64,000 bases of DNA. Source: Schizochytrium sp. TIO01. Its lineage: Eukaryota > Protista > Bigyra: Labyrinthulomycetes. Each line of letters starts with the position of its first letter. Within the stretch, counting starts at the first letter, position 1. A model generated the notes under the pieces. That model ran no database searches and was not told where the DNA came from. It saw nothing but the letters and a program-made list of their open reading frames with translations. The stretch covers positions 1,836,747 through 1,900,746 of the forward strand of contig SMSO01000037.1 in assembly GCA_004764695.1 (NCBI GenBank), in the 5' to 3' direction. Shown here in pieces: positions 39,832 through 51,241 of the stretch. The translations under genes were made by a program, and so were the position numbers.

Positions 39832-41274
39832 ATGAGCGCCGGTGCCGGACAATTCGCAATGTATATCGATGGCAAGCCCGCCCAGGGTAGCCAGGAGCCC
39901 TTTAATGTCATTAACCCGTACGATGGCTCCGTGGTCGCCAAGGCCCCCACATGCGGAAAGGAAGACCTCGACAGGGCTGTGAGCTCCGCTCGTAAGGCCT
40001 TCAAGTCGTGGTCTACTTTGGGCTTTGATGAGCGCAAGAAGTACCTCGCTAAGATGGGCGATGTGCTCGCCAAGAACAAGGATTACCTTGTAGAGCTTCT
40101 TGTCCAAGAGCAGGGCAAGGGACGTATCCAAGCTGAAGGCGAGGTCTTGGCAAGCCAGGGCTGGATCCAGAATGCCCTTGACACGAAGAACCCGAACAAC
40201 CTTCAAGGCGATGGTGACCTCAAGGTACAAAAGACATACCGCCCACTTGGCGTGGTTGGCTGCATCACCGCCTGGAACTTTCCTATCGCTCTTGTGCACT
40301 TTAAGGTTTCTTTTGGTCTTCTCGCTGGTTGCACCTTAATTCTTAAGCCCTCCGAGAACACCCCGCTTTGCACCCTTGAGCTTGCCCGCCTCTACAACGA
40401 AGTGCTCCCTCCTGGTGTTCTCTCTGTCGTCACCAGTGAGAAGAAGGAGCTTGGCGAATGGCTTGTCAACCACCCGGGTATCGACAAGATCTCCTTCACT
40501 GGAAGCACTGCCACGGGTAAGCGCATCCTCGAGAACGCTGCTCGCTCCCTTAAGCGCGTCACCCTCGAGCTTGGTGGTAATGACCCGGCTATTGTGCTCA
40601 AGGACGCTGATCCTAAGCAGGTTGCCGCTGGCATCTTTCAGGCTGCCTTCTATAACAGTGGCCAGGTTTGCATTGCCATCAAGCGTTGCTTTGTGCACGA
40701 ATCTATCTACGATGCCGTCCTTCAGGCTCTCGTAGAGCAAGCTAAGAACGCCCCGTTCGGCAATGGCCTTGACAAGAACATCATTTATGGACCGATTAAC
40801 AACGCCATGCAGTACGACCGTGTGCGCGAGCTTCTCATTGATGCCCTTGACAACGGTGCCAAGATGCACTGCGGTGAGGTCCCCCCCAAGCGTGAGGATA
40901 CTAAGGGATACATGATCAAGCCTGCGGTGCTCAGTAACGTTAAGGAAGGTGTGCGTATTGTTGATGAGGAACAGTTTGGCCCTGTACTTCCAGTCATGCC
41001 TTACAAGACTGTTGAGGAAGCCATCGAACGTGCTAACAATACCGAGTATGGCCTTGGTGCCAGTGTCTGGACCTCTAACGCCGAGGCCGGTGAGGAAGTT
41101 GCTTCCCAACTCAATGCTGGAACTGTCTGGGTCAACACTCATGGTGAGATCGATGGCACCGTTGCTTTTGGTGGCGCCAAGTGCAGTGGCATGGGCCACG
41201 AGGGCGGCCCTGAGGGTCTCACGGCTTTTATGCAGCTTCATGTGATCAAGACCCGCCGCGCAGCTGCTCTTTAA
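39832..41274 (+). CDS. NAD-dependent aldehyde dehydrogenase, paralogue 1
   Basis: WNFP, KPSE, SFTGS, catalytic Glu in TLELGG, catalytic Cys in GQVC, EEQFGP, YGLGASVW, FGG.K.SG. Confidence 0.97.
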   Translation: MSAGAGQFAMYIDGKPAQGSQEPFNVINPYDGSVVAKAPTCGKEDLDRAVSSARKAFKSWSTLGFDERKKYLAKMGDVLAKNKDYLVELLVQEQGKGRIQAEGEVLASQGWIQNALDTKNPNNLQGDGDLKVQKTYRPLGVVGCITAWNFPIALVHFKVSFGLLAGCTLILKPSENTPLCTLELARLYNEVLPPGVLSVVTSEKKELGEWLVNHPGIDKISFTGSTATGKRILENAARSLKRVTLELGGNDPAIVLKDADPKQVAAGIFQAAFYNSGQVCIAIKRCFVHESIYDAVLQALVEQAKNAPFGNGLDKNIIYGPINNAMQYDRVRELLIDALDNGAKMHCGEVPPKREDTKGYMIKPAVLSNVKEGVRIVDEEQFGPVLPVMPYKTVEEAIERANNTEYGLGASVWTSNAEAGEEVASQLNAGTVWVNTHGEIDGTVAFGGAKCSGMGHEGGPEGLTAFMQLHVIKTRRAAAL

Positions 41275-42220: not shown

Positions 42221-43684
42221 ATGCAGCAGGTTGGCAAACACTTGGCGGCGCAGGGCAGACGCGCGATGATTATTGGAGGGAGGCAAGTTGCGGGCAGTAA
42301 GGCCTTCGATGTGATCAACCCGTTCGATGAGTCCGTGGTGGGCCAGGCTCCGTCGTGCTCTCGCGAGGAGCTCGACGAAGCTGTGAAGGAAGCGCGCAAG
42401 GCATTCCCAGCGTGGTCCAGCAAGACCTTTGAGGAGCGTAAAGAATATTTGGGCAAAATGTCGCAGGTTCTCGCGGATAACGCGGATTCTCTGATTGAGC
42501 TCCTGGTGAAAGAACAAGGCAAAGGCCTCCCGCAAGCCAAAGGTGAGCTCCTCGGTAGCCAGGGGTGGCTCAAGGCCGCCATGAGGCTGGACAACCCCAA
42601 TAAACTACATGCAGAGGATGAGAAGAAGAAGATCCACAAAGTATACAGACCTTTGGGCGTGGTCGGCTGCATTACGGCTTGGAACTTCCCGCTTTCTCTT
42701 ATTCACTTCAAGATTTCCTCTGCCCTGCTTTCTGGATGCACGGTCATCGTCAAGCCCAGCGAGCACACCCCACTAGCCAGCCTTGAAGCTATTCGCTTGT
42801 TCAACGAGGTTCTTCCCCCCGGTGTCTTATCTATTGTGACCAGTGAGAAAGGAGAGCTTGGCGCATGGATGGTTGAGCACCCTGGTATTGACAAGATCTC
42901 GTTCACTGGAAGCACCCCGACTGGCAAGAAGATCATGGAGACCGCAGCGAAAACCCTCAAGCGTGTCACTCTTGAGCTTGGCGGCAACGATCCGGCCATT
43001 GTGCTCAAGGATGTAGACCCCAAGAAGGCTGCCAAGGGCCTCTTTGGCGCAGCTTTCGGTAACAGTGGTCAAATCTGCATTGCTGCCAAGCGTGTCTACG
43101 TGGATGAGGCTATTTACGAGGATACTCTTCAGGCTCTTGCTGAGATCGCCAAAAATGCACCCTTCGGCAACGGACTTGAGAAAGATGTCGTGTTCGGCCC
43201 TCTCAATAACGCGATGCAGTATGACAAGGTGCGCGAGCTTCTCATTGACGCGCTCGACAACGGCGCAGAAATGGTTTGCGGTGAAGTACCCCCTGCGCGT
43301 GGCGGCTCTTCTAAGGGCTTCATGATTAAGCCCGTGGTGCTCCGCAATGTCAAGGAGGGTATGCGCATTGTTGATGAGGAGCAGTTTGGCCCTGTGCTTC
43401 CAGTGATGTCCTACAAAACCATCGAGGAGGCAGTTGATCGGGCTAATGACTCCGAGTATGGACTTGGCGCTAGTGTGTGGACTAAGGATCTTGACAGGGG
43501 AGAGGAGATTGCTAACCAGCTCCATGCTGGCACTGTCTGGGTTAACACTCACTCTGAGATTGACGGCAGCATTGCCTTTGGAGGTGCCAAATGCAGTGGT
43601 GTGGGTTTCGAAGGTGGAGATGAGGGTCTCCTGGCCTTCATGCAGCTGCATGTCATTCGCACCAAGCGCAACGCCAAACTCTAA
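42221..43684 (+). CDS. NAD-dependent aldehyde dehydrogenase, paralogue 2, C-terminal PTS1-like AKL
   Basis: Same ALDH motifs (TLELGG, GQIC, EEQFGP). Ends ...TKRNAKL. Confidence 0.97.
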   Translation: MQQVGKHLAAQGRRAMIIGGRQVAGSKAFDVINPFDESVVGQAPSCSREELDEAVKEARKAFPAWSSKTFEERKEYLGKMSQVLADNADSLIELLVKEQGKGLPQAKGELLGSQGWLKAAMRLDNPNKLHAEDEKKKIHKVYRPLGVVGCITAWNFPLSLIHFKISSALLSGCTVIVKPSEHTPLASLEAIRLFNEVLPPGVLSIVTSEKGELGAWMVEHPGIDKISFTGSTPTGKKIMETAAKTLKRVTLELGGNDPAIVLKDVDPKKAAKGLFGAAFGNSGQICIAAKRVYVDEAIYEDTLQALAEIAKNAPFGNGLEKDVVFGPLNNAMQYDKVRELLIDALDNGAEMVCGEVPPARGGSSKGFMIKPVVLRNVKEGMRIVDEEQFGPVLPVMSYKTIEEAVDRANDSEYGLGASVWTKDLDRGEEIANQLHAGTVWVNTHSEIDGSIAFGGAKCSGVGFEGGDEGLLAFMQLHVIRTKRNAKL

Positions 43685-44762: not shown

Positions 44763-46537
44763 TTTTTTATTCAGGAACGGGCCCCTTCAAAAAGAATGAT
44801 GTTTCTATAATAACTTTCGCAAGTCTGCTGCTCTCACGAGAAGTATTTGTCCACTACCCTTTGTAAAAAAATATATATGCTGCGATATGACCTTAACTGA
44901 GCTTCTCTGTGCTGCCAAAACACCACCACTGGTCAAGCTCTCAATCTCTAGCCCCAGGTGGCTATGCTATGCAAGCACTTAAAACTTGAGTAAGCTTTCT
45001 GGTACTTCATACTTTCCTAACTTGGTGAAGAGATAAACTGTCAGGATGGTACTCAGCAACGACATTTTGTCAGGTGGTTCTTGCTCGCTCAAAGCAGATT
45101 TCATTGTGAAAACTGAGCTTACCTATTATGTTTGTATAGAAGAAATCAGTTTGGCAGGCTCTCTTGCGCTTGTTCTTTAGCATCATACCTTAGCACTTAA
45201 TAGAAAGCCTCGTCGAATAAGTCTGCGAGATCAGATATGTGGGTGCTTCCTCTAATTCTTCAACACCAGCGCTCAGACAGAGCCCTGCTGCTCATTTAAC
45301 TCTCTTCGCTAGCTCATGCTGCTTATTTACTATTGAAAGCCTGGTTCTCTAAAGGCTTGCCTTGCTGGCGCAAAGGTAATAGTGCGCCCCATCGATACCA
45401 AAAGACAATCGCAAGCCTCCGCCCCTATTTTCAAAACGAGATTCGCCAAGCACATTTTGAGGTATGCTAGATAACATCAGAAAGCACGTTTCTTTCCTGC
45501 CGCTGCCAGAAGGAGGGCGTGCATCTTGAGCAGTAAGGCTTTCCAGCATCCTTTACAAATTGCAGAGACTGCCGCACATTCCCCCCTGAACACAAAATGT
45601 TCTTCAGATGGCCTCAAATGCACATGAAGCAGGCCACTATCTTTTCAAGGGCTCATTCAAAAGAGTTGCAACTACTCAGGAATTGGGCAACTTGGAAGAC
45701 GAGTATATATATTTGCAAGTGCATTAGGCCTTCTTTATTGGGACGAAGACCAAGTAAGTATCTTCTCTTCTCTCTCTTCGCTTCTCCATTTCATAATTAA
45801 TTGAAATTAAAATAATAGTAATAATAGTATTTATTATTATTTTATTTATTTTATTCTTAATATTTAGTAGAATAGAGGCAAACTCTTTTTGAACTTGGGT
45901 TATCCTGCTTTAGACGACGCTCTGATTGGGGTTTACGGGGAGTTTCAAAGAAAAGTGTTTTTTCTTGTTTAAAAAACTGTCCCAAAACCTATCGATTAAA
46001 AAAACAGCTTCGAGCTTCGCTTGGCGCAAGTAATATCAGTCGACGCCCTCACACCTGAGCACTTTGATCACCCAGCAAGTAAAAGAAGAAAGCCTATCGG
46101 GTATAAAAGGCACTTTGTGATTTGTAGGACTCTGACTTTTGGTTTGTTTTTGTTGCAATGCGCAAAGTATTTCCCGCCCTTTCTTTTCTTATCTTTTTCT
46201 TGAAAGTTTTACAAATGAAAATAGTGAATCGCACACACTAATCAGACAGTAAGATCAAAAAACGTAAAAGTTCGATAACTTATATTTCGATGTGATTGTT
46301 TCATATTAACCATATATTATGTTTAGTTAGATTATTAATAAGAAGTAGAGGTTAGATAAGAAAATGGGGAGGCCGAGGAACCGACAAGCTCCAAACACTG
46401 CAAGTGGAGCAAACCTCGAATACAAACCAGCAAAGTTCTTTCACCATCTCATTGGAAACACGCTAGTCGCTTACTTGATGCTTCAGGTGCTGACGCGTGA
46501 TTTGCGGGGGAGTATTGAAGTAATATACAGCTACTGT

Positions 46538-46562
46538 CTAACCTAACCTAACCTAACCTAAC
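46538..46562 (+). repeat. (CTAAC)5 array at the putative left end of the element
   Basis: Perfect pentamer run (TTAGG on the minus strand). Confidence 0.9.
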
Positions 46563-46691
46563 CAAGCCCTCATGTCCGACACATCCTGTGTATCGGACTG
46601 ACATCATACATTCATTCCTGCCTGTATCCAGACCTGAAACCCCAATAACTCATATATCATCCTCTTTCTCTTTCTCCTGAGTTCGTCATCC

Positions 46692-47356
46692 TTGTCAGAC
46701 TACCTCTCCACGCTTCACAGCTCAGGCTACTCTGCAATAGGAAGTTTGGGGTCTCAGCAAGCGCCCTTCGGGGCTGGGCCGACGGCGGACGCGTGCGCTT
46801 CGCGCGCTTCCCCGGAGGCAAGCGCATCTATGTCAGCGACGATGTTGAGCGCATCTTTGATTGCGGTTCCACCGGCCGCGAGCAACGCAGCTCTGGATGT
46901 ACCGTTATCTACGCCAGAGTGTCCTCAGTCAAGCAAAAGGAGGACCTCGAACGCCAGGTTGGCGATCTCCAGCGCGCCTACCCAGATGCTTCCGCCGTCT
47001 ACAAAGACATCGGTAGCGGGGTCAATTTCAAACGCCAAGGTCTGTGCTCCCTACTGGACGCCTGTGACCGCGGCGGAATCGGCCAAGTTGTGGTCATGCA
47101 CCGCGACCAACTTGCGCGAATCGCAGTCGACCTCTTGGAACACCTTTTCGAAAGATAAAATGTCAAACTCGTGGTACACGGCCAAGATGCACATGCCGGA
47201 GACTCAGACACCTTCACCAAAGACCTCCTCGGAATCATCACCGTCTTTGTGGCATCGCATCACGGAAAACGAGCAGCGCAAAATAGACGGCGACGACGCA
47301 GCGAGGAAGAAGCGAGCTCGCACGAAGGCGCGCAAGACCATCAAGAAAGAATATAA
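46692..47356 (+). pseudogene. tnpA: IS607-type TnpA (MerR-like HTH plus serine recombinase), disrupted
   Basis: Frame of ORF 46793 extended both ways reads RKFGVSASALRGWADGGRVRFARFPGGKRIY (HTH), VIYARVSS.KQKEDLERQ (catalytic Ser, 46910-46927), DIGSGVNFKRQGL, HRDQLAR, then in-frame TAA 47156-58, then NVKLVV...DLLGIITVFVASHHGKRAAQNRRRR. No in-frame ATG upstream of the HTH. Confidence 0.9.
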
Positions 47357-48635
47357 CCTTGTCCGTACCAGAAAGGTTAGGGTATATCCTACTAAAGATC
47401 AACGTACACAGTTGCTTAAATGGTTTGGTGTCACTAGAAGAGCCTACAATATTGGCGTTGCGTTTCACCGAGACATGGCGAAGGGCGAGAAAGAAGCCAT
47501 CAGATTGCATCAAGAAGCGTGCATCAAAAAGGATCGTAAGACGAAGCAGGTTTTGGTAGATGAAGATGGGAATCCAAAAACACATGGGGCACTTGGTGGA
47601 GAACTGAAGGCCGTCCGATATAAAGAAAAGAATGCTGCTCCTAAATGGGTTCTCGAGGTCCCACAGGCTATCCGTGATTCCGGGATTCTGGATTTCTTCA
47701 AGGCTATTAACTCGGGACGAGCCAAAAACGAAGAACTCGCTGTACAAAAGAAAGTCCATGAGCAATCTTTTTATAAGTTTCGGACCAAGCGTGATGAATC
47801 ACAGATTTTCGAAGTGAATGCACGTACCTGGAATTTGAAGAAATCAAAGACCTCCAACTTTCTAAAAGAATTCCGAACACGTAAAGAAGAGTTCCCCGAC
47901 CAGATTTCGAACGCCATGCGTGTGCAAATGAATCGCCTTGGGCATGTCTACTTCTGCTTCTTACGAGAAGAAAAAAAGCGTCCAATGGACCAGGCACCCA
48001 AGGCGCACCATGGTGTCATTGCTCTAGACCCGGGTGTTCGCTCGTTTCAGACGATGTATGACGCCGATGGCCGCGCCATTGAATGGGGCACAGGGAAAGA
48101 TTTTAGAACCATATTCTATCTCTGTCGCCGCGTTGATAAGATCCAAAGCAGCATTGATAAAAAGAAAACTGCATCCAGTGATAAAGACAATTTCAACACC
48201 CCCTTGAAGCGCGCCTTCTATCGCGCCCAACTCAAGATCAAGAACAAGATCACTGAGATTCACCGCAAGCTCGCGCTTTGGCTTTGTGAAAATTATCGTG
48301 TTATTCTCCTGCCCAAATTCGAAACCTCTAAGATGAGCAGGAGGATGGAGCGACGGATCTCCAAGAAGTCTATTCGAATGATGTGTCGTTGGTCCCATTT
48401 TGGGTTCCGCCAGGCTCTCATTCATAAGGCTGAGATGTTCCCGTGGTGCAAGCTTGTTCTTTGCCAAGAAAGTTACACTTCCAAAACATGCAATGAGTGT
48501 GGTACCCTCCACCATAACCTCGGGGCATCCAAGATTTTCCAATGCCCTAATCCCAAGTGCAACCATGTAGCAGACCGTGATGTCCATGCCGCAAGAGGCA
48601 TCCTTTTACGCTACCTATCCAAGGACATGATTTAA
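46830..48635 (+). CDS. tnpB: Fanzor2 / IS607 TnpB-like RNA-guided endonuclease (reading frame open from TTG 46692; first ATG 46830)
   Basis: OrfB HTH (RKVRVYPTKDQRTQLLKWFGVTRRAYN), RuvC-I VIALDPGVRSF (Asp codon 48027), Pro at the canonical RuvC-II site (ILLPKF, 48312), relocated Glu in CQESYTSKTC (48468), Zn ribbon CNEC...CPNPKC and RuvC-III DRDVHAARGI (48579). Confidence 0.93.
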   Translation: MSATMLSASLIAVPPAASNAALDVPLSTPECPQSSKRRTSNARLAISSAPTQMLPPSTKTSVAGSISNAKVCAPYWTPVTAAESAKLWSCTATNLRESQSTSWNTFSKDKMSNSWYTAKMHMPETQTPSPKTSSESSPSLWHRITENEQRKIDGDDAARKKRARTKARKTIKKEYNLVRTRKVRVYPTKDQRTQLLKWFGVTRRAYNIGVAFHRDMAKGEKEAIRLHQEACIKKDRKTKQVLVDEDGNPKTHGALGGELKAVRYKEKNAAPKWVLEVPQAIRDSGILDFFKAINSGRAKNEELAVQKKVHEQSFYKFRTKRDESQIFEVNARTWNLKKSKTSNFLKEFRTRKEEFPDQISNAMRVQMNRLGHVYFCFLREEKKRPMDQAPKAHHGVIALDPGVRSFQTMYDADGRAIEWGTGKDFRTIFYLCRRVDKIQSSIDKKKTASSDKDNFNTPLKRAFYRAQLKIKNKITEIHRKLALWLCENYRVILLPKFETSKMSRRMERRISKKSIRMMCRWSHFGFRQALIHKAEMFPWCKLVLCQESYTSKTCNECGTLHHNLGASKIFQCPNPKCNHVADRDVHAARGILLRYLSKDMI

Positions 48636-48763
48636 AAAAAATCATTTCATTGAGTCGCGGGTTAGTCTAACTAATCCGCGATCGGGTCTTAGACCTACTA
48701 TGAAATGCAAGTTTTGCAAATTTTGTAGTTTAAAATCTAAGAGAACTGTAGAAGAGGAATTTG
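48636..48763 (+). ncRNA. Putative Fanzor omegaRNA (scaffold ~48636-48743 plus flanking guide ~48744-48763)
   Basis: CATTTCAT 48643-50 pairs with ATGAAATG 48700-07 and encloses an 11-bp hairpin 48655-81 and hairpin 48684-96. TCTTAGA 48687-93 is complementary to TCTAAGA 48736-42. Lies directly 3' of the nuclease stop. Confidence 0.75.
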
Positions 48764-49783: not shown

Positions 49784-51241
49784 ATGAGTGTCACCACGGC
49801 AGCCAGCGGAAGATTTAATATGACCATCGATGGAAAATCGCATGAAGGCTCGGACCAGCCGTTTACCGTGTACAACCCGTACGATGGCTCCGTTGTAGCC
49901 GAGGCCCCGACATGCTCTAAGGAAGACCTTGATCTGGCGGTTGAAGGTGCTCGTAAAGCGCTCCCTGCCTGGTCTGCCAAGACCTTCGAGGAGCGTAAGG
50001 AGGTTCTCCAAAAAATGTCGGCCATTCTAGACAAGAACAAGGAAAGCCTGTCGAAGCTCCTTGTACTCGAGCAGGGCAAAGGTCTTCCCCAGGCCGAGTT
50101 TGAAATTATGGCAAGCCAAATCTGGTTCCAAAGCGCATTTAAGATGGAAAATCCTAACAAGACCCTCAATGACTCTGAACAGGCAAAAGTTCAAAAGACT
50201 TATCGCCCTCTCGGTGTTGTGGGCTGCATTGTTCCTTGGAACTTTCCCTTGGTCCTCTTCCACTTCAAGGTGCCTCTTGCGCTGCTCGCAGGCTGCACGA
50301 TTGTCTTAAAACCGAGTGAAAACACCCCTCTGAGTACGTTGGAGCTGGCACGTCTTTACAATGAAGTTTTGCCTCCTGGTGTTCTCAATGTAGTAACCAG
50401 CGAGCAGCGTGATCTGGGCGAATGGATGGTCGCCCACCCTGGCATCGATAAGATTTCCTTCACAGGTAGCACATCTACCGGAAAGAAAATTCTTGAGAAT
50501 TCTGCCAAGCACCTCAAGCGTGTAACTCTTGAGCTCGGTGGTAATGATGCTGCGATTGTCCTCGAAGATGCGGACCCCAAATCTACTGCTGCAAGCCTCT
50601 TTCAATCTGCCTTCATCAACAGTGGTCAGGTTTGTGTAGCCGTCAAGAGAGTTTTTGTTCCAGAGTCAATTTTTGATGAAGTTGTCAATGGAATTGCAGA
50701 GCATGCTCGTAATGCACCCTTCGGCAATGGGCTAGAAGAAGGTATGTTCTTTGGACCAATCAACAATGGTATGCAATACGAACGTGTGCGAGAACTGCTC
50801 GTTGATGCCCTTGACAATGGTGCGGAGATGGTTGTTGGCGAAGTGCCTCCTCCGAGGGATGATACCAAGGGCTACATGTTCAAACCAGTCGTGTTGCGCA
50901 ATGTGAAAGAAGGCATGCGTATTGTAGATGAAGAGCAGTTTGGGCCTGTCCTTCCTGTTCTTTCCTACACAGACATTGAAGATGCTATCCATCGTGCTAA
51001 TGATACTGAATACGGTCTTGGCGCAAGCGTTTGGACCTCAAACGAGGATGAAGGCGAGAAGGTTGCCAGCAGACTCAATGCAGGTACCGTCTGGATTAAT
51101 ACTCACGCTGAAATGGATGGGACTGTTGGCTTTGGAGGCGCAAAATGTAGCGGCATCGGATGTGAAGGTGGTTCGGAAGGTCTACTTTCCTTTATGCAGC
51201 TTCATGTTCTTCACACAAAACGTGCTTCTCCTCAGCAATAA
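49784..51241 (+). CDS. NAD-dependent aldehyde dehydrogenase, paralogue 3
   Basis: PWNFP, KPSE, SFTGS, TLELGG, GQVC, EEQFGP. Confidence 0.97.
   Translation: MSVTTAASGRFNMTIDGKSHEGSDQPFTVYNPYDGSVVAEAPTCSKEDLDLAVEGARKALPAWSAKTFEERKEVLQKMSAILDKNKESLSKLLVLEQGKGLPQAEFEIMASQIWFQSAFKMENPNKTLNDSEQAKVQKTYRPLGVVGCIVPWNFPLVLFHFKVPLALLAGCTIVLKPSENTPLSTLELARLYNEVLPPGVLNVVTSEQRDLGEWMVAHPGIDKISFTGSTSTGKKILENSAKHLKRVTLELGGNDAAIVLEDADPKSTAASLFQSAFINSGQVCVAVKRVFVPESIFDEVVNGIAEHARNAPFGNGLEEGMFFGPINNGMQYERVRELLVDALDNGAEMVVGEVPPPRDDTKGYMFKPVVLRNVKEGMRIVDEEQFGPVLPVLSYTDIEDAIHRANDTEYGLGASVWTSNEDEGEKVASRLNAGTVWINTHAEMDGTVGFGGAKCSGIGCEGGSEGLLSFMQLHVLHTKRASPQQ

Follow-up and report, generated by a model that had tools for sequence, protein, structure and literature searches.

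The window examined here, 64,000 nucleotides of contig SMSO01000037.1 from the labyrinthulomycete Schizochytrium sp. TIO01, harbors an IS607-type element at about positions 46256-48743 (+ strand), which very likely is a non-autonomous copy that belongs to a young family and transposed recently, featuring an intact gene for the nuclease Fanzor2 and an intact 3' RNA region together with a dead gene for the transposase TnpA. Fanzor2 proteins were demonstrated to be RNA-guided nucleases in 2023. Moreover, there is a roughly even chance that the N-terminal domain specific to Fanzor2 originated by overprinting on tnpA and continues to be encoded in this way, in this family as well as in at least seven relatives (31-41% identity). 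The kind of element is known, since Fanzor2 genes in IS607-type elements have been described since 2013 (PMC3627910), but the family itself appears to be new. In the searchable Fanzor literature and its supplements no thraustochytrid Fanzor was found, and thraustochytrid names are likewise absent from the census supplements of PMC10432273; the suggestion of the first-pass annotation of this DNA that the nuclease is uncharacterized thus appears right for the family. A full element encodes two proteins on the same strand, TnpA with 232 amino acids (aa) and Fanzor2 with about 600-617 aa.

The genome-wide search for copies which had been proposed at the outset was carried out in the host's own genome (64.07 Mb, 37 contigs) and revealed at least 23 near-full copies, 80-100% identical, plus fragments, at unrelated loci on more than ten contigs. 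The family is mobile and multi-copy. Among the near-full copies the Fanzor frame is open in 15 and TnpA is intact in 10, with both conditions combined in nine. The coverage ratio in a DNA-like sequencing run, with a depth of about 800-1200 on the element body and about 47 on the 3' flank, corresponds to roughly 17-25 copies. Three to four siblings are 99-100% identical to the copy in the window. The limits of the element were taken from the homology among these sister copies, which starts at about 46247-46256 and stops sharply at 48743 (...CTAAGAG) in 25 copies, with unrelated flanks beyond. The left end (46256-46445) comprises the tnpA start ATG at 46364 and the first 27 tnpA codons. Hence, the boundaries given initially (46531-48763) have to be corrected on both sides, as the left edge falls inside a foreign insert and the last 20 nucleotides (nt) are flanking DNA, i.e., the putative guide.

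The Fanzor2 gene (46830-48635, + strand) encodes 601 aa from its first in-frame ATG at 46830 to the stop codon TAA at 48633-48635 and was assigned by means of profiles, fold and a matching transcript open reading frame (ORF). It forms part of an uninterrupted frame of 647 codons (46692-48635), as had been claimed, whose TTG start merely follows the convention of the ORF listing. The core resembling TnpB starts with a helix-turn-helix (HTH) domain (HTH_OrfB_IS605, 47367-47474, Pfam E 1.5e-8, residues 226-261 of the 647-aa reading), and a zinc ribbon of the four cysteines C554, C557, C572, and C577 (CxxC...CxxxxC, 48489-48560) is located downstream, covered by the Pfam profile Cas12f1-like_TNB with E 3.1e-13 (residues 571-637 of the 647-aa reading). 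The catalytic site comprises the RuvC-I aspartate D400 in the DPG motif of ALDPG (48027-48029; D446 if counted from the TTG), the relocated glutamate E547 in QESYTSKTC, six residues before the first ribbon cysteine (48468-48470; E593), and the RuvC-III aspartate D584, the second one of DRD (48579-48581; D630). At the canonical site of the RuvC-II glutamate a proline is found instead (Pro495, 48312-48314), with LLPKFE being aligned to CIGKLN of ApmFz2, the mimivirus protein L79. All of these features had been read from the DNA by the first-pass annotation and proved correct: the three acidic residues align with the catalytic residues of L79, the cysteines lie within the profile match, and the alignment to ApmFz2 confirms both the proline and the glutamate next to the zinc finger. 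Fanzor proteins have been described to possess a RuvC site rearranged in this way, the glutamate having moved and a non-acidic residue taking its place at the canonical RuvC-II position (PMC13565253; PMC11832414). Among 46 relatives D400, E547, and D584 are invariant, as are C554, C572, and C577, and C557 is conserved in more than 90%.

The profile searches and the structure prediction suggested at the outset led to the same protein family. The best sequence match among solved structures is ApmFz2 (9b0l; phmmer E 4.6e-19), and an AlphaFold model built from the 46 relatives, with a mean predicted local distance difference test score (pLDDT) of 80.7 and a predicted template modeling score of 0.76, again returned 9b0l as the top match in Foldseek (E 3.4e-17). 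In the VIA comparison, model residues 72-601 were superimposed on residues 53-518 of this chain with Z 21.6 and a root-mean-square deviation of 4.2 over 429 residues, and the TnpB of ISDra2 (8exa, 8h1j, 8bf8) reached Z 18.5-19.1; among the PDB matches ApmFz2 outranks all TnpB and Fanzor1 chains. In the part that codes for Fanzor only, the ratio of non-synonymous to synonymous substitution rates (dN/dS) amounts to 0.16-0.42 between subfamilies, which indicates purifying selection on the nuclease during diversification of the family. The nearest relative outside the host genome is 49% identical, and the nearest named one, a Durusdinium protein annotated as 'transposase A625R', 46%. A cyanobacterial TnpB (P0107) is among the database matches as well, as is expected from the proposed origin of Fanzor2 (PMC10711439). 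Taken together, the identification of the protein as a Fanzor2 with TnpB/Fanzor fold and relocated glutamate in a eukaryotic genome is supported. The claim that it belongs to an IS607-derived element likewise held, based on profiles, fold, context, and the TnpA of sister copies.

This TnpA, as found intact in the sister copy L013 (232 aa), matches the full NCBIfam profile transpos_IS607 (NF033518) with 143.7 bits at a cut-off of 110. The family carries an IS607 transposase, but the copy in the window does not, its gene being interrupted and truncated. The tnpA frame is shifted by one frame relative to the Fanzor ORF and starts upstream of it at ATG 46364, where the ORF 46364-46546 begins with MGRPRNRQ like the intact protein of sister copies. 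Directly behind codon 27 a foreign insert of 294 bp follows (46446-46739, + strand), representing the 3' end of a Ty1/copia element. It is missing from most copies, in which 46445 is joined straight to 46740. The remnant downstream of the insert (46740-47158) encodes the end of the HTH and the serine-recombinase catalytic domain, with the catalytic motif ...VIYARVSS... read in the tnpA frame and a Pfam Resolvase match of E 1e-14 on 46793-47158, and terminates in a premature TAA at 47156-47158. Beyond the stop, the rest of the C-terminal part including the helix E region (47159-47356) continues in the same frame and aligns with the C-terminus of intact TnpA. As the insert contains stops in the tnpA frame in addition to the premature TAA, tnpA is dead in the window copy, which accordingly must rely on TnpA of sister copies. 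Hence, the first impression of a complete system applies to the nuclease and RNA half, but not to the transposase, which is split by the long terminal repeat (LTR) fragment and cut short by the stop.

Both defects are shared with sister copies. The codon at 47156-47158 reads TAA in the window and AAA (Lys) in other sister copies, a change that merely replaces Glu by Asp in the Fanzor frame. The premature TAA is common to eight copies (window, L002-L004, L006, L009, L011, L024) from subfamilies 96-100% identical to the window copy, so elements with a truncated TnpA have been propagating for some time. The insert occurs in five copies (window, L002, L003, L004, L024), which reside at different loci and are 99-100% identical, indicating that the defective form moved after it had gained the insert; presumably it was mobilized by TnpA supplied in trans. 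The insert itself consists of about 66 nt from the internal 3' end of the copia element and the entire 228-bp LTR, which holds (CCTAA)5, i.e., five copies of the host telomere unit. The insert matches the LTR end of L056 (C33:1922400-1929000), a young copia element in which two identical LTRs are spaced by 5609 bp and the pol ORF, carrying rve and RVT_2 domains, is intact. A 5'-truncated retroelement end inside a transposon resembles the outcome of cDNA being captured while a break is repaired. An interpretation of the 294 bp as an intron was rejected, since both the sister copies and the DNA-like run contain the insert-free join at the DNA level. An alternative genetic code, which would remove the tnpA TAA, was rejected too, because the sisters have AAA and the Fanzor gene of the window itself ends with TAA.

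The 108 nt behind the Fanzor2 stop codon (48636-48743, + strand) constitute a candidate scaffold of the omegaRNA, the guide RNA, which may start inside the ORF. The early claim of a folded non-coding region directly downstream of the gene withstood a shuffling control, as 48480-48743 folds with a z-score of -4.7 and none of 200 shuffles folded as well. A search of the 3' region against Rfam gave no relevant match. Two long hairpins are predicted at 48654-48682 and 48698-48728, being 94% paired in 26 copies vs. 30-44% for controls with slid partners. RNAalifold did not recover them from the 26-copy alignment because dead copies have deletions. Between both, a small GGG..CCC hairpin (48684-48696) exposes the loop UCUUAG (48687-48692), which is complementary to 48737-48742 in the terminus of the element, CUAAGA(G) (48737-48743), so that loop and terminus are candidates for the 5' and the 3' half of a pseudoknot. 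The pairing is UCUUAG/CUAAGA in the window and identical in the relative L032, and covaries in L045 (UCUUAAG/CUUAAGA), L037 (CUCGA/UCGAG), and L040/41 (UUACU/AGUAA). In every lineage the second half is found at the homologous right-end position or at the point where copies diverge. Moreover, the terminal 55 nt or so are the best-conserved part of the element and can still be aligned with those of metagenome relatives in which only about half of the protein residues are the same. In omegaRNAs of TnpB and Fanzor2, the scaffold 3' end has been described to form a pseudoknot (PMC13565253), and the pairing observed here is a candidate for the same structure. The DNA directly beyond 48743 begins with AACTGTAG...; this unique 3' flank (48744-48763), in which the copies diverge, is the putative guide of the window copy's omegaRNA, in line with the flank-derived guides of TnpB and Fanzor2 (PMC13565253).

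Two minor observations concern right ends. In the metagenomic clade L040-L044, two copies diverge just after AGTAAAG, a sequence that pairs with the loop in the upstream GGG..CCC hairpin. Besides, one contig of the DNA-like run X19 jumps back 51 nt at the right end (joint 48744>48694), which suggests that some copy in that strain has its right end partially duplicated in tandem.

By analogy with work on TnpB, IS607 elements and Fanzor2 (PMC13565253; PMC10530073; PMC11832414), the following cycle can be proposed. TnpA provided by an intact copy would excise the element. As in TnpB and ApmFz2 systems, the omegaRNA scaffold would be formed by the 3' portion of the transcript ending with ...CUAAGAG, its pseudoknot joining 48687-48692 to 48737-48742, and the adjoining 15-20 nt of flank from 48744 on would serve as the guide. 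The complex of Fanzor2 and omegaRNA would then recognize the resealed donor site via a target-adjacent motif (TAM) in the 5' flank and the 3' flank matching the guide, and cut it. Repair of the break from a copy bearing the element would finally restore the latter, a process of restorative homing. RNA binding, guided cleavage, TAM and homing role would thus correspond to those of the related systems, and the Fanzor2 system of the element in the window is probably active.

Expression was assessed with contigs from Logan assemblies of four runs, the RNA label of three transcriptome-sized ones being only guessed, and with MMETSP transcripts. A transcript ORF of 601 aa (P0001) is 100% identical over the 491-aa query, and another one of 617 aa (P0121) equals the long ORF of insert-free copies. 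In the three transcriptome-sized runs the element body shows depths of 10^3-10^4 vs. 0-4 for the unique flanks. In these RNA-like runs, the left-end piece holding the TnpA ATG (46265-46445) is 10-100x shallower than the body. This depth profile hints at abundant short mRNAs that start inside tnpA and give rise to Fanzor, and at rare long ones giving rise to TnpA. Transcription is established for the family, not for the window copy specifically.

Several results count against this reading of the element. The NCBIfam model guided_TnpB covers residues 182-593 with 90 bits, which supports a core of the TnpB type, but this score lies just under the NCBI cut-off. Covariation in the two long hairpins does not exceed that of column shuffles, the changes being mostly GC<->GU; the hairpins are compatible with a structure, not proven, and substitutions confined to G-U pairs fit an RNA of the + strand. 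Coverage by the RNA-like runs drops over the last 100 nt or so of the element to a depth 15-70x lower than that of the ORF, which could reflect RNA processing or merely an earlier poly(A) site. The base at 46833 is C in all runs and T in the window, so that the abundant transcripts derive from sister copies or another strain, and in the contigs of the four runs none was found running from the right end of the window copy into its own flank. The last two points, together with the dead tnpA, favor an explanation in which the window copy is an idle passenger of an active family, free of selection since its insertion, and yields no functional Fanzor2-omegaRNA complex itself. Translation behind the LTR fragment could be poor too: the Fanzor ATG of sister copies, which in insert-free ones (+124) is the next ATG after that of TnpA, is ACG in the window copy, and the ATG at 46830 lies behind three other ATGs on a full-length transcript. 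Such an idle state is nevertheless unlikely, given that nothing is missing from the ORF, conserved residues included, that 99-100% identity to three to four siblings leaves too little time for decay, and that the LTR fragment just upstream, in sense orientation, could promote transcription.

The ends of the element were compared among 19 copies. The invariant left end begins with (T/A)CAAAAA(A/C)CGT and is preceded by a junction motif (46247-46255, + strand), which reads CAGTAAGAT here and CAGTATR in the family consensus. Each position of CAGTATR is conserved to just 47-74% in 19 copies. These seven bases vary between copies otherwise 99-100% identical, as fits DNA of the target or TAM side, and thus represent a candidate for this function. 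Past the right end, 18 of the 19 copies have A or T as their first flanking base. The right end is sharp, the left end near-sharp, and 16 of the 19 copies lack a flanking repeat above background. Serine recombinases are not expected to make flanking direct repeats. In the remaining three copies (L005, L015, and L018), exact direct repeats of 13, 9, and 8 bp link the respective flanks. Their distance from the conserved ends varies, and one of the cases includes 10 additional nt of 3' sequence; in a control with mismatched flanks the probability of at least 8 bp was 1.5%, i.e., about 0.3 cases are expected in 19 copies. This excess speaks against spread by TnpA alone and raises the question of whether part of it proceeded without TnpA, by capture at staggered breaks, possibly made by Fanzor, or by ectopic break-repair copying with variable duplications. 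The retroelement 3' fragment within tnpA is itself a sign of break repair, and Helitron2 elements carrying Fanzor1 show variable target-site duplications of 7-19 bp (PMC3627910). However, the repeats are restricted to three copies, most others being devoid of them as fits a serine recombinase, and an A-rich target preference resembling the tip of the left end could inflate chance repeats; a TnpA-independent share in the spread is therefore quite unlikely. Apart from this, an inverted 9-mer is common to the left end (46323-46331) and to the loop and arm of the first 3' hairpin (48666-48674), reading TTAGTTAGA and TCTAACTAA, respectively; both sites are possible TnpA binding sites.

The most unusual trait of the family is the position of the Fanzor N-terminal part. 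Over about 175 codons (46830-47356, + strand) the Fanzor ORF runs in the +1 frame across tnpA, and this overlap makes up most of its first 180 or so residues, the region that the TnpB model does not cover. In the predicted structure, residues 1-71 are disordered and residues 72-175 structured, with pLDDT values of 60-93 and a basic patch at 159-173. ApmFz2 aligns from model residue 72 on (chain residue 53), in contrast to every TnpB and Cas12f chain, which align only from about residue 175. Residues 53-130 of ApmFz2 belong to its N-terminal domain, of which the RuvC-R portion completes RuvC and contacts the omegaRNA and a basic thumb adjoins the TAM (PMC11832414). Accordingly, the model predicts that the protein in the window possesses the N-terminal RuvC-R/thumb domain of Fanzor2, which is absent from TnpB. 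The basic patch before the HTH domain had been regarded as resembling a nuclear localization signal (NLS). The patch does exist, but it aligns with residues 114-128 of L79, the thumb contacting DNA, and the NLS of ApmFz2 is located further toward the N-terminus than the thumb (PMC11832414). Besides being a thumb, the patch may serve as an NLS, although its position does not suggest this.

Comparison with relatives indicates that the overlap is not restricted to the host genome. Relatives at 36-49% identity comprise 578-642 aa and align across the N-terminal overlap, with tryptophan-rich motifs being invariant in 13 of them (...FWT...LWSCT...YWS...NSWFT...SLW..ITENEQRK). When the 120-aa region alone was searched against 1.84 billion proteins, it hit 62 clusters, and every match fell on residues of about 50-235 in proteins of Fanzor2 size. 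In seven metagenomic relatives (Fanzor 31-41%, TnpA 37-52% identity), Fanzor always occupies the +1 frame of TnpA, with hundreds of bases in common. In eight of eight lineages the +1 frame contains no stops over the last 226-279 tnpA codons, whereas the +2 frame contains 4-15. Within the family, the synonymous substitution rate (dS) of tnpA in the overlap is 3-5x below that of the Fanzor-only part (e.g., 0.033 vs. 0.140 and 0.186 vs. 0.706), as is expected if these sites are non-synonymous for a second protein. A differing arrangement is found in the metagenomic clade L040-L044, in which about 160 nt separate the end of tnpA from the nuclease and the match of the latter is limited to residue 193 and beyond, i.e., the plain IS607 layout; this clade is likely a sister group without the overprinted domain.

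The same overlap could in principle be untranslated, in which case the true Fanzor would have 491 aa and start at ATG 47160, and the +1 frame would be open as a by-product of tnpA composition. This ATG is located directly after the tnpA stop of the window copy, the long form is predicted to be disordered at residues 1-71, and the Fanzor-frame dN/dS is near 1 in many pairs within the family. When tnpA codons were permuted synonymously, with protein and codon usage kept, the +1 frame stayed open in only 0.05-19% of trials per sequence, the upper value, reached by single sequences, being in favor of a by-product. A by-product hardly accounts for a frame without stops in all eight lineages beside a +2 frame with 4-15 of them, for the invariant tryptophan-rich motifs, for the occurrence of the region at the same place in all 62 clusters, for a part modeled with pLDDT 60-93 that aligns with a domain TnpB lacks, or for the lowered dS. 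On these grounds the idea that the 156 or so codons before ATG 47160 are out-of-frame noise was rejected, and a start at this codon is considered very unlikely.

Among known systems, ApmFz2 of Acanthamoeba polyphaga mimivirus, also called ApmFNuc, is the closest one, sharing with the window the fold including the N-terminal domain, the rearranged RuvC site, the zinc ribbon, the basic thumb-like patch before the HTH, the IS607 context with TnpA, and a conserved structured 3' non-coding region that reaches up to the right end (PMC10530073; PMC11832414). However, both proteins are only about 18-20% identical, and the N-terminus in the window is about 90 residues longer. Moreover, the family is multi-copy in a host genome as compared to three viral copies of ApmFz2, its 3' tail amounts to about 108 nt instead of the reported 200 nt or so, and the likely target or TAM side is A/T-rich (CAGTATR) and not GGG (PMC11832414). 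Bacterial IS607 elements, e.g., ISXfa1 and cyanobacterial relatives, which bear an omegaRNA at the right end, resemble the family in having tnpA followed by tnpB on one strand and sharp ends without inverted repeats, and the TnpA of the family exceeds the IS607 equivalog cut-off. In contrast to them, the family resides in a eukaryotic nuclear host, its catalytic glutamate is relocated, and its nuclease bears an extra N-terminal part of about 180 residues, of which about 175 codons lie over tnpA. The Fanzor2 architecture is further shared with MmeFz2, DpFNuc, NlovFz2, and 'transposases' of the chlorovirus A625R type, and eukaryotic Fanzor2s were described to occur in multi-copy families in which the 3' RNA is conserved and a guide region of 14-15 nt varies (PMC10530073; PMC13565253). 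The family differs from the characterized ones in that its nearest outside relative is only 49% identical, and the census text that was searched lists no thraustochytrid.

Regarded as a nuclease alone, the protein is an incremental addition to a well-surveyed family, whereas dual coding, if undescribed, is its most interesting aspect; in the Fanzor papers searched, full text included, no description of an overlap between tnpA and Fanzor was found. If the overprinting is true, one DNA stretch encodes both a recombinase and the part of a nuclease that braces RuvC and contacts TAM-proximal DNA. This would explain the origin of the Fanzor2 N-terminal domain and physically tie the evolution of nuclease and transposase to each other. 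Fanzor2s are candidates for compact eukaryotic genome editing. As the family is young and transcribed, retains nine copies with both genes intact, and resides in an industrial protist that can be cultured and transformed, it makes excision, homing and guide use testable in a native setting, and the defective sub-lineage to which the window copy belongs implies that mobilization in trans happened recently.

Regarding its surroundings, the element is inserted in ordinary host DNA. Long CCTAA/TTAGG telomere arrays are present at contig ends (e.g., C3:1-292 and C3:2322094-2322373), and the same unusual five-base unit is known from Aurantiochytrium limacinum (10.1101/2023.06.15.545109). Both flanks of the element are single-copy in the host genome; a pre-insertion (empty) site was sought in the assembly and none was found, both flanks being unique. 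Three tandem paralogs of an aldehyde dehydrogenase (ALDH) gene are located at 39832-41274, 42221-43684, and 49784-51241, with the element between the second and the third, followed by a CH-domain gene and a glycosyltransferase gene. The ALDH 3' of the element is 70% identical to that of Hondaea fermentalgiana. Telomere and ALDH evidence agree and are consistent with an Aurantiochytrium-like thraustochytrid nuclear genome, and the initial statement that this is a eukaryotic and not a bacterial contig is borne out by the telomeres, the single-copy flanks and the ALDH genes. An integrated segment of a giant virus or mirusvirus instead of a host transposon is hardly credible: Fanzor2 is enriched in giant viruses (PMC10530073), one relative is named after chlorovirus A625R, and viral elements are known in Aurantiochytrium (10.1101/2023.06.15.545109), but the homologous unit is sharply delimited, measures just about 2.2 kb, occurs scattered over at least ten contigs in unique DNA and has host ALDH and cytoskeletal genes as neighbors, and a scan of viral contigs found no relative. 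As to the ALDH genes themselves, their relatives besides Hondaea are protist proteins (MMETSP/JGI) at about 54-57% identity, and the best named others are alphaproteobacterial at about 50%, which suggests an old bacterial origin of this ALDH family.

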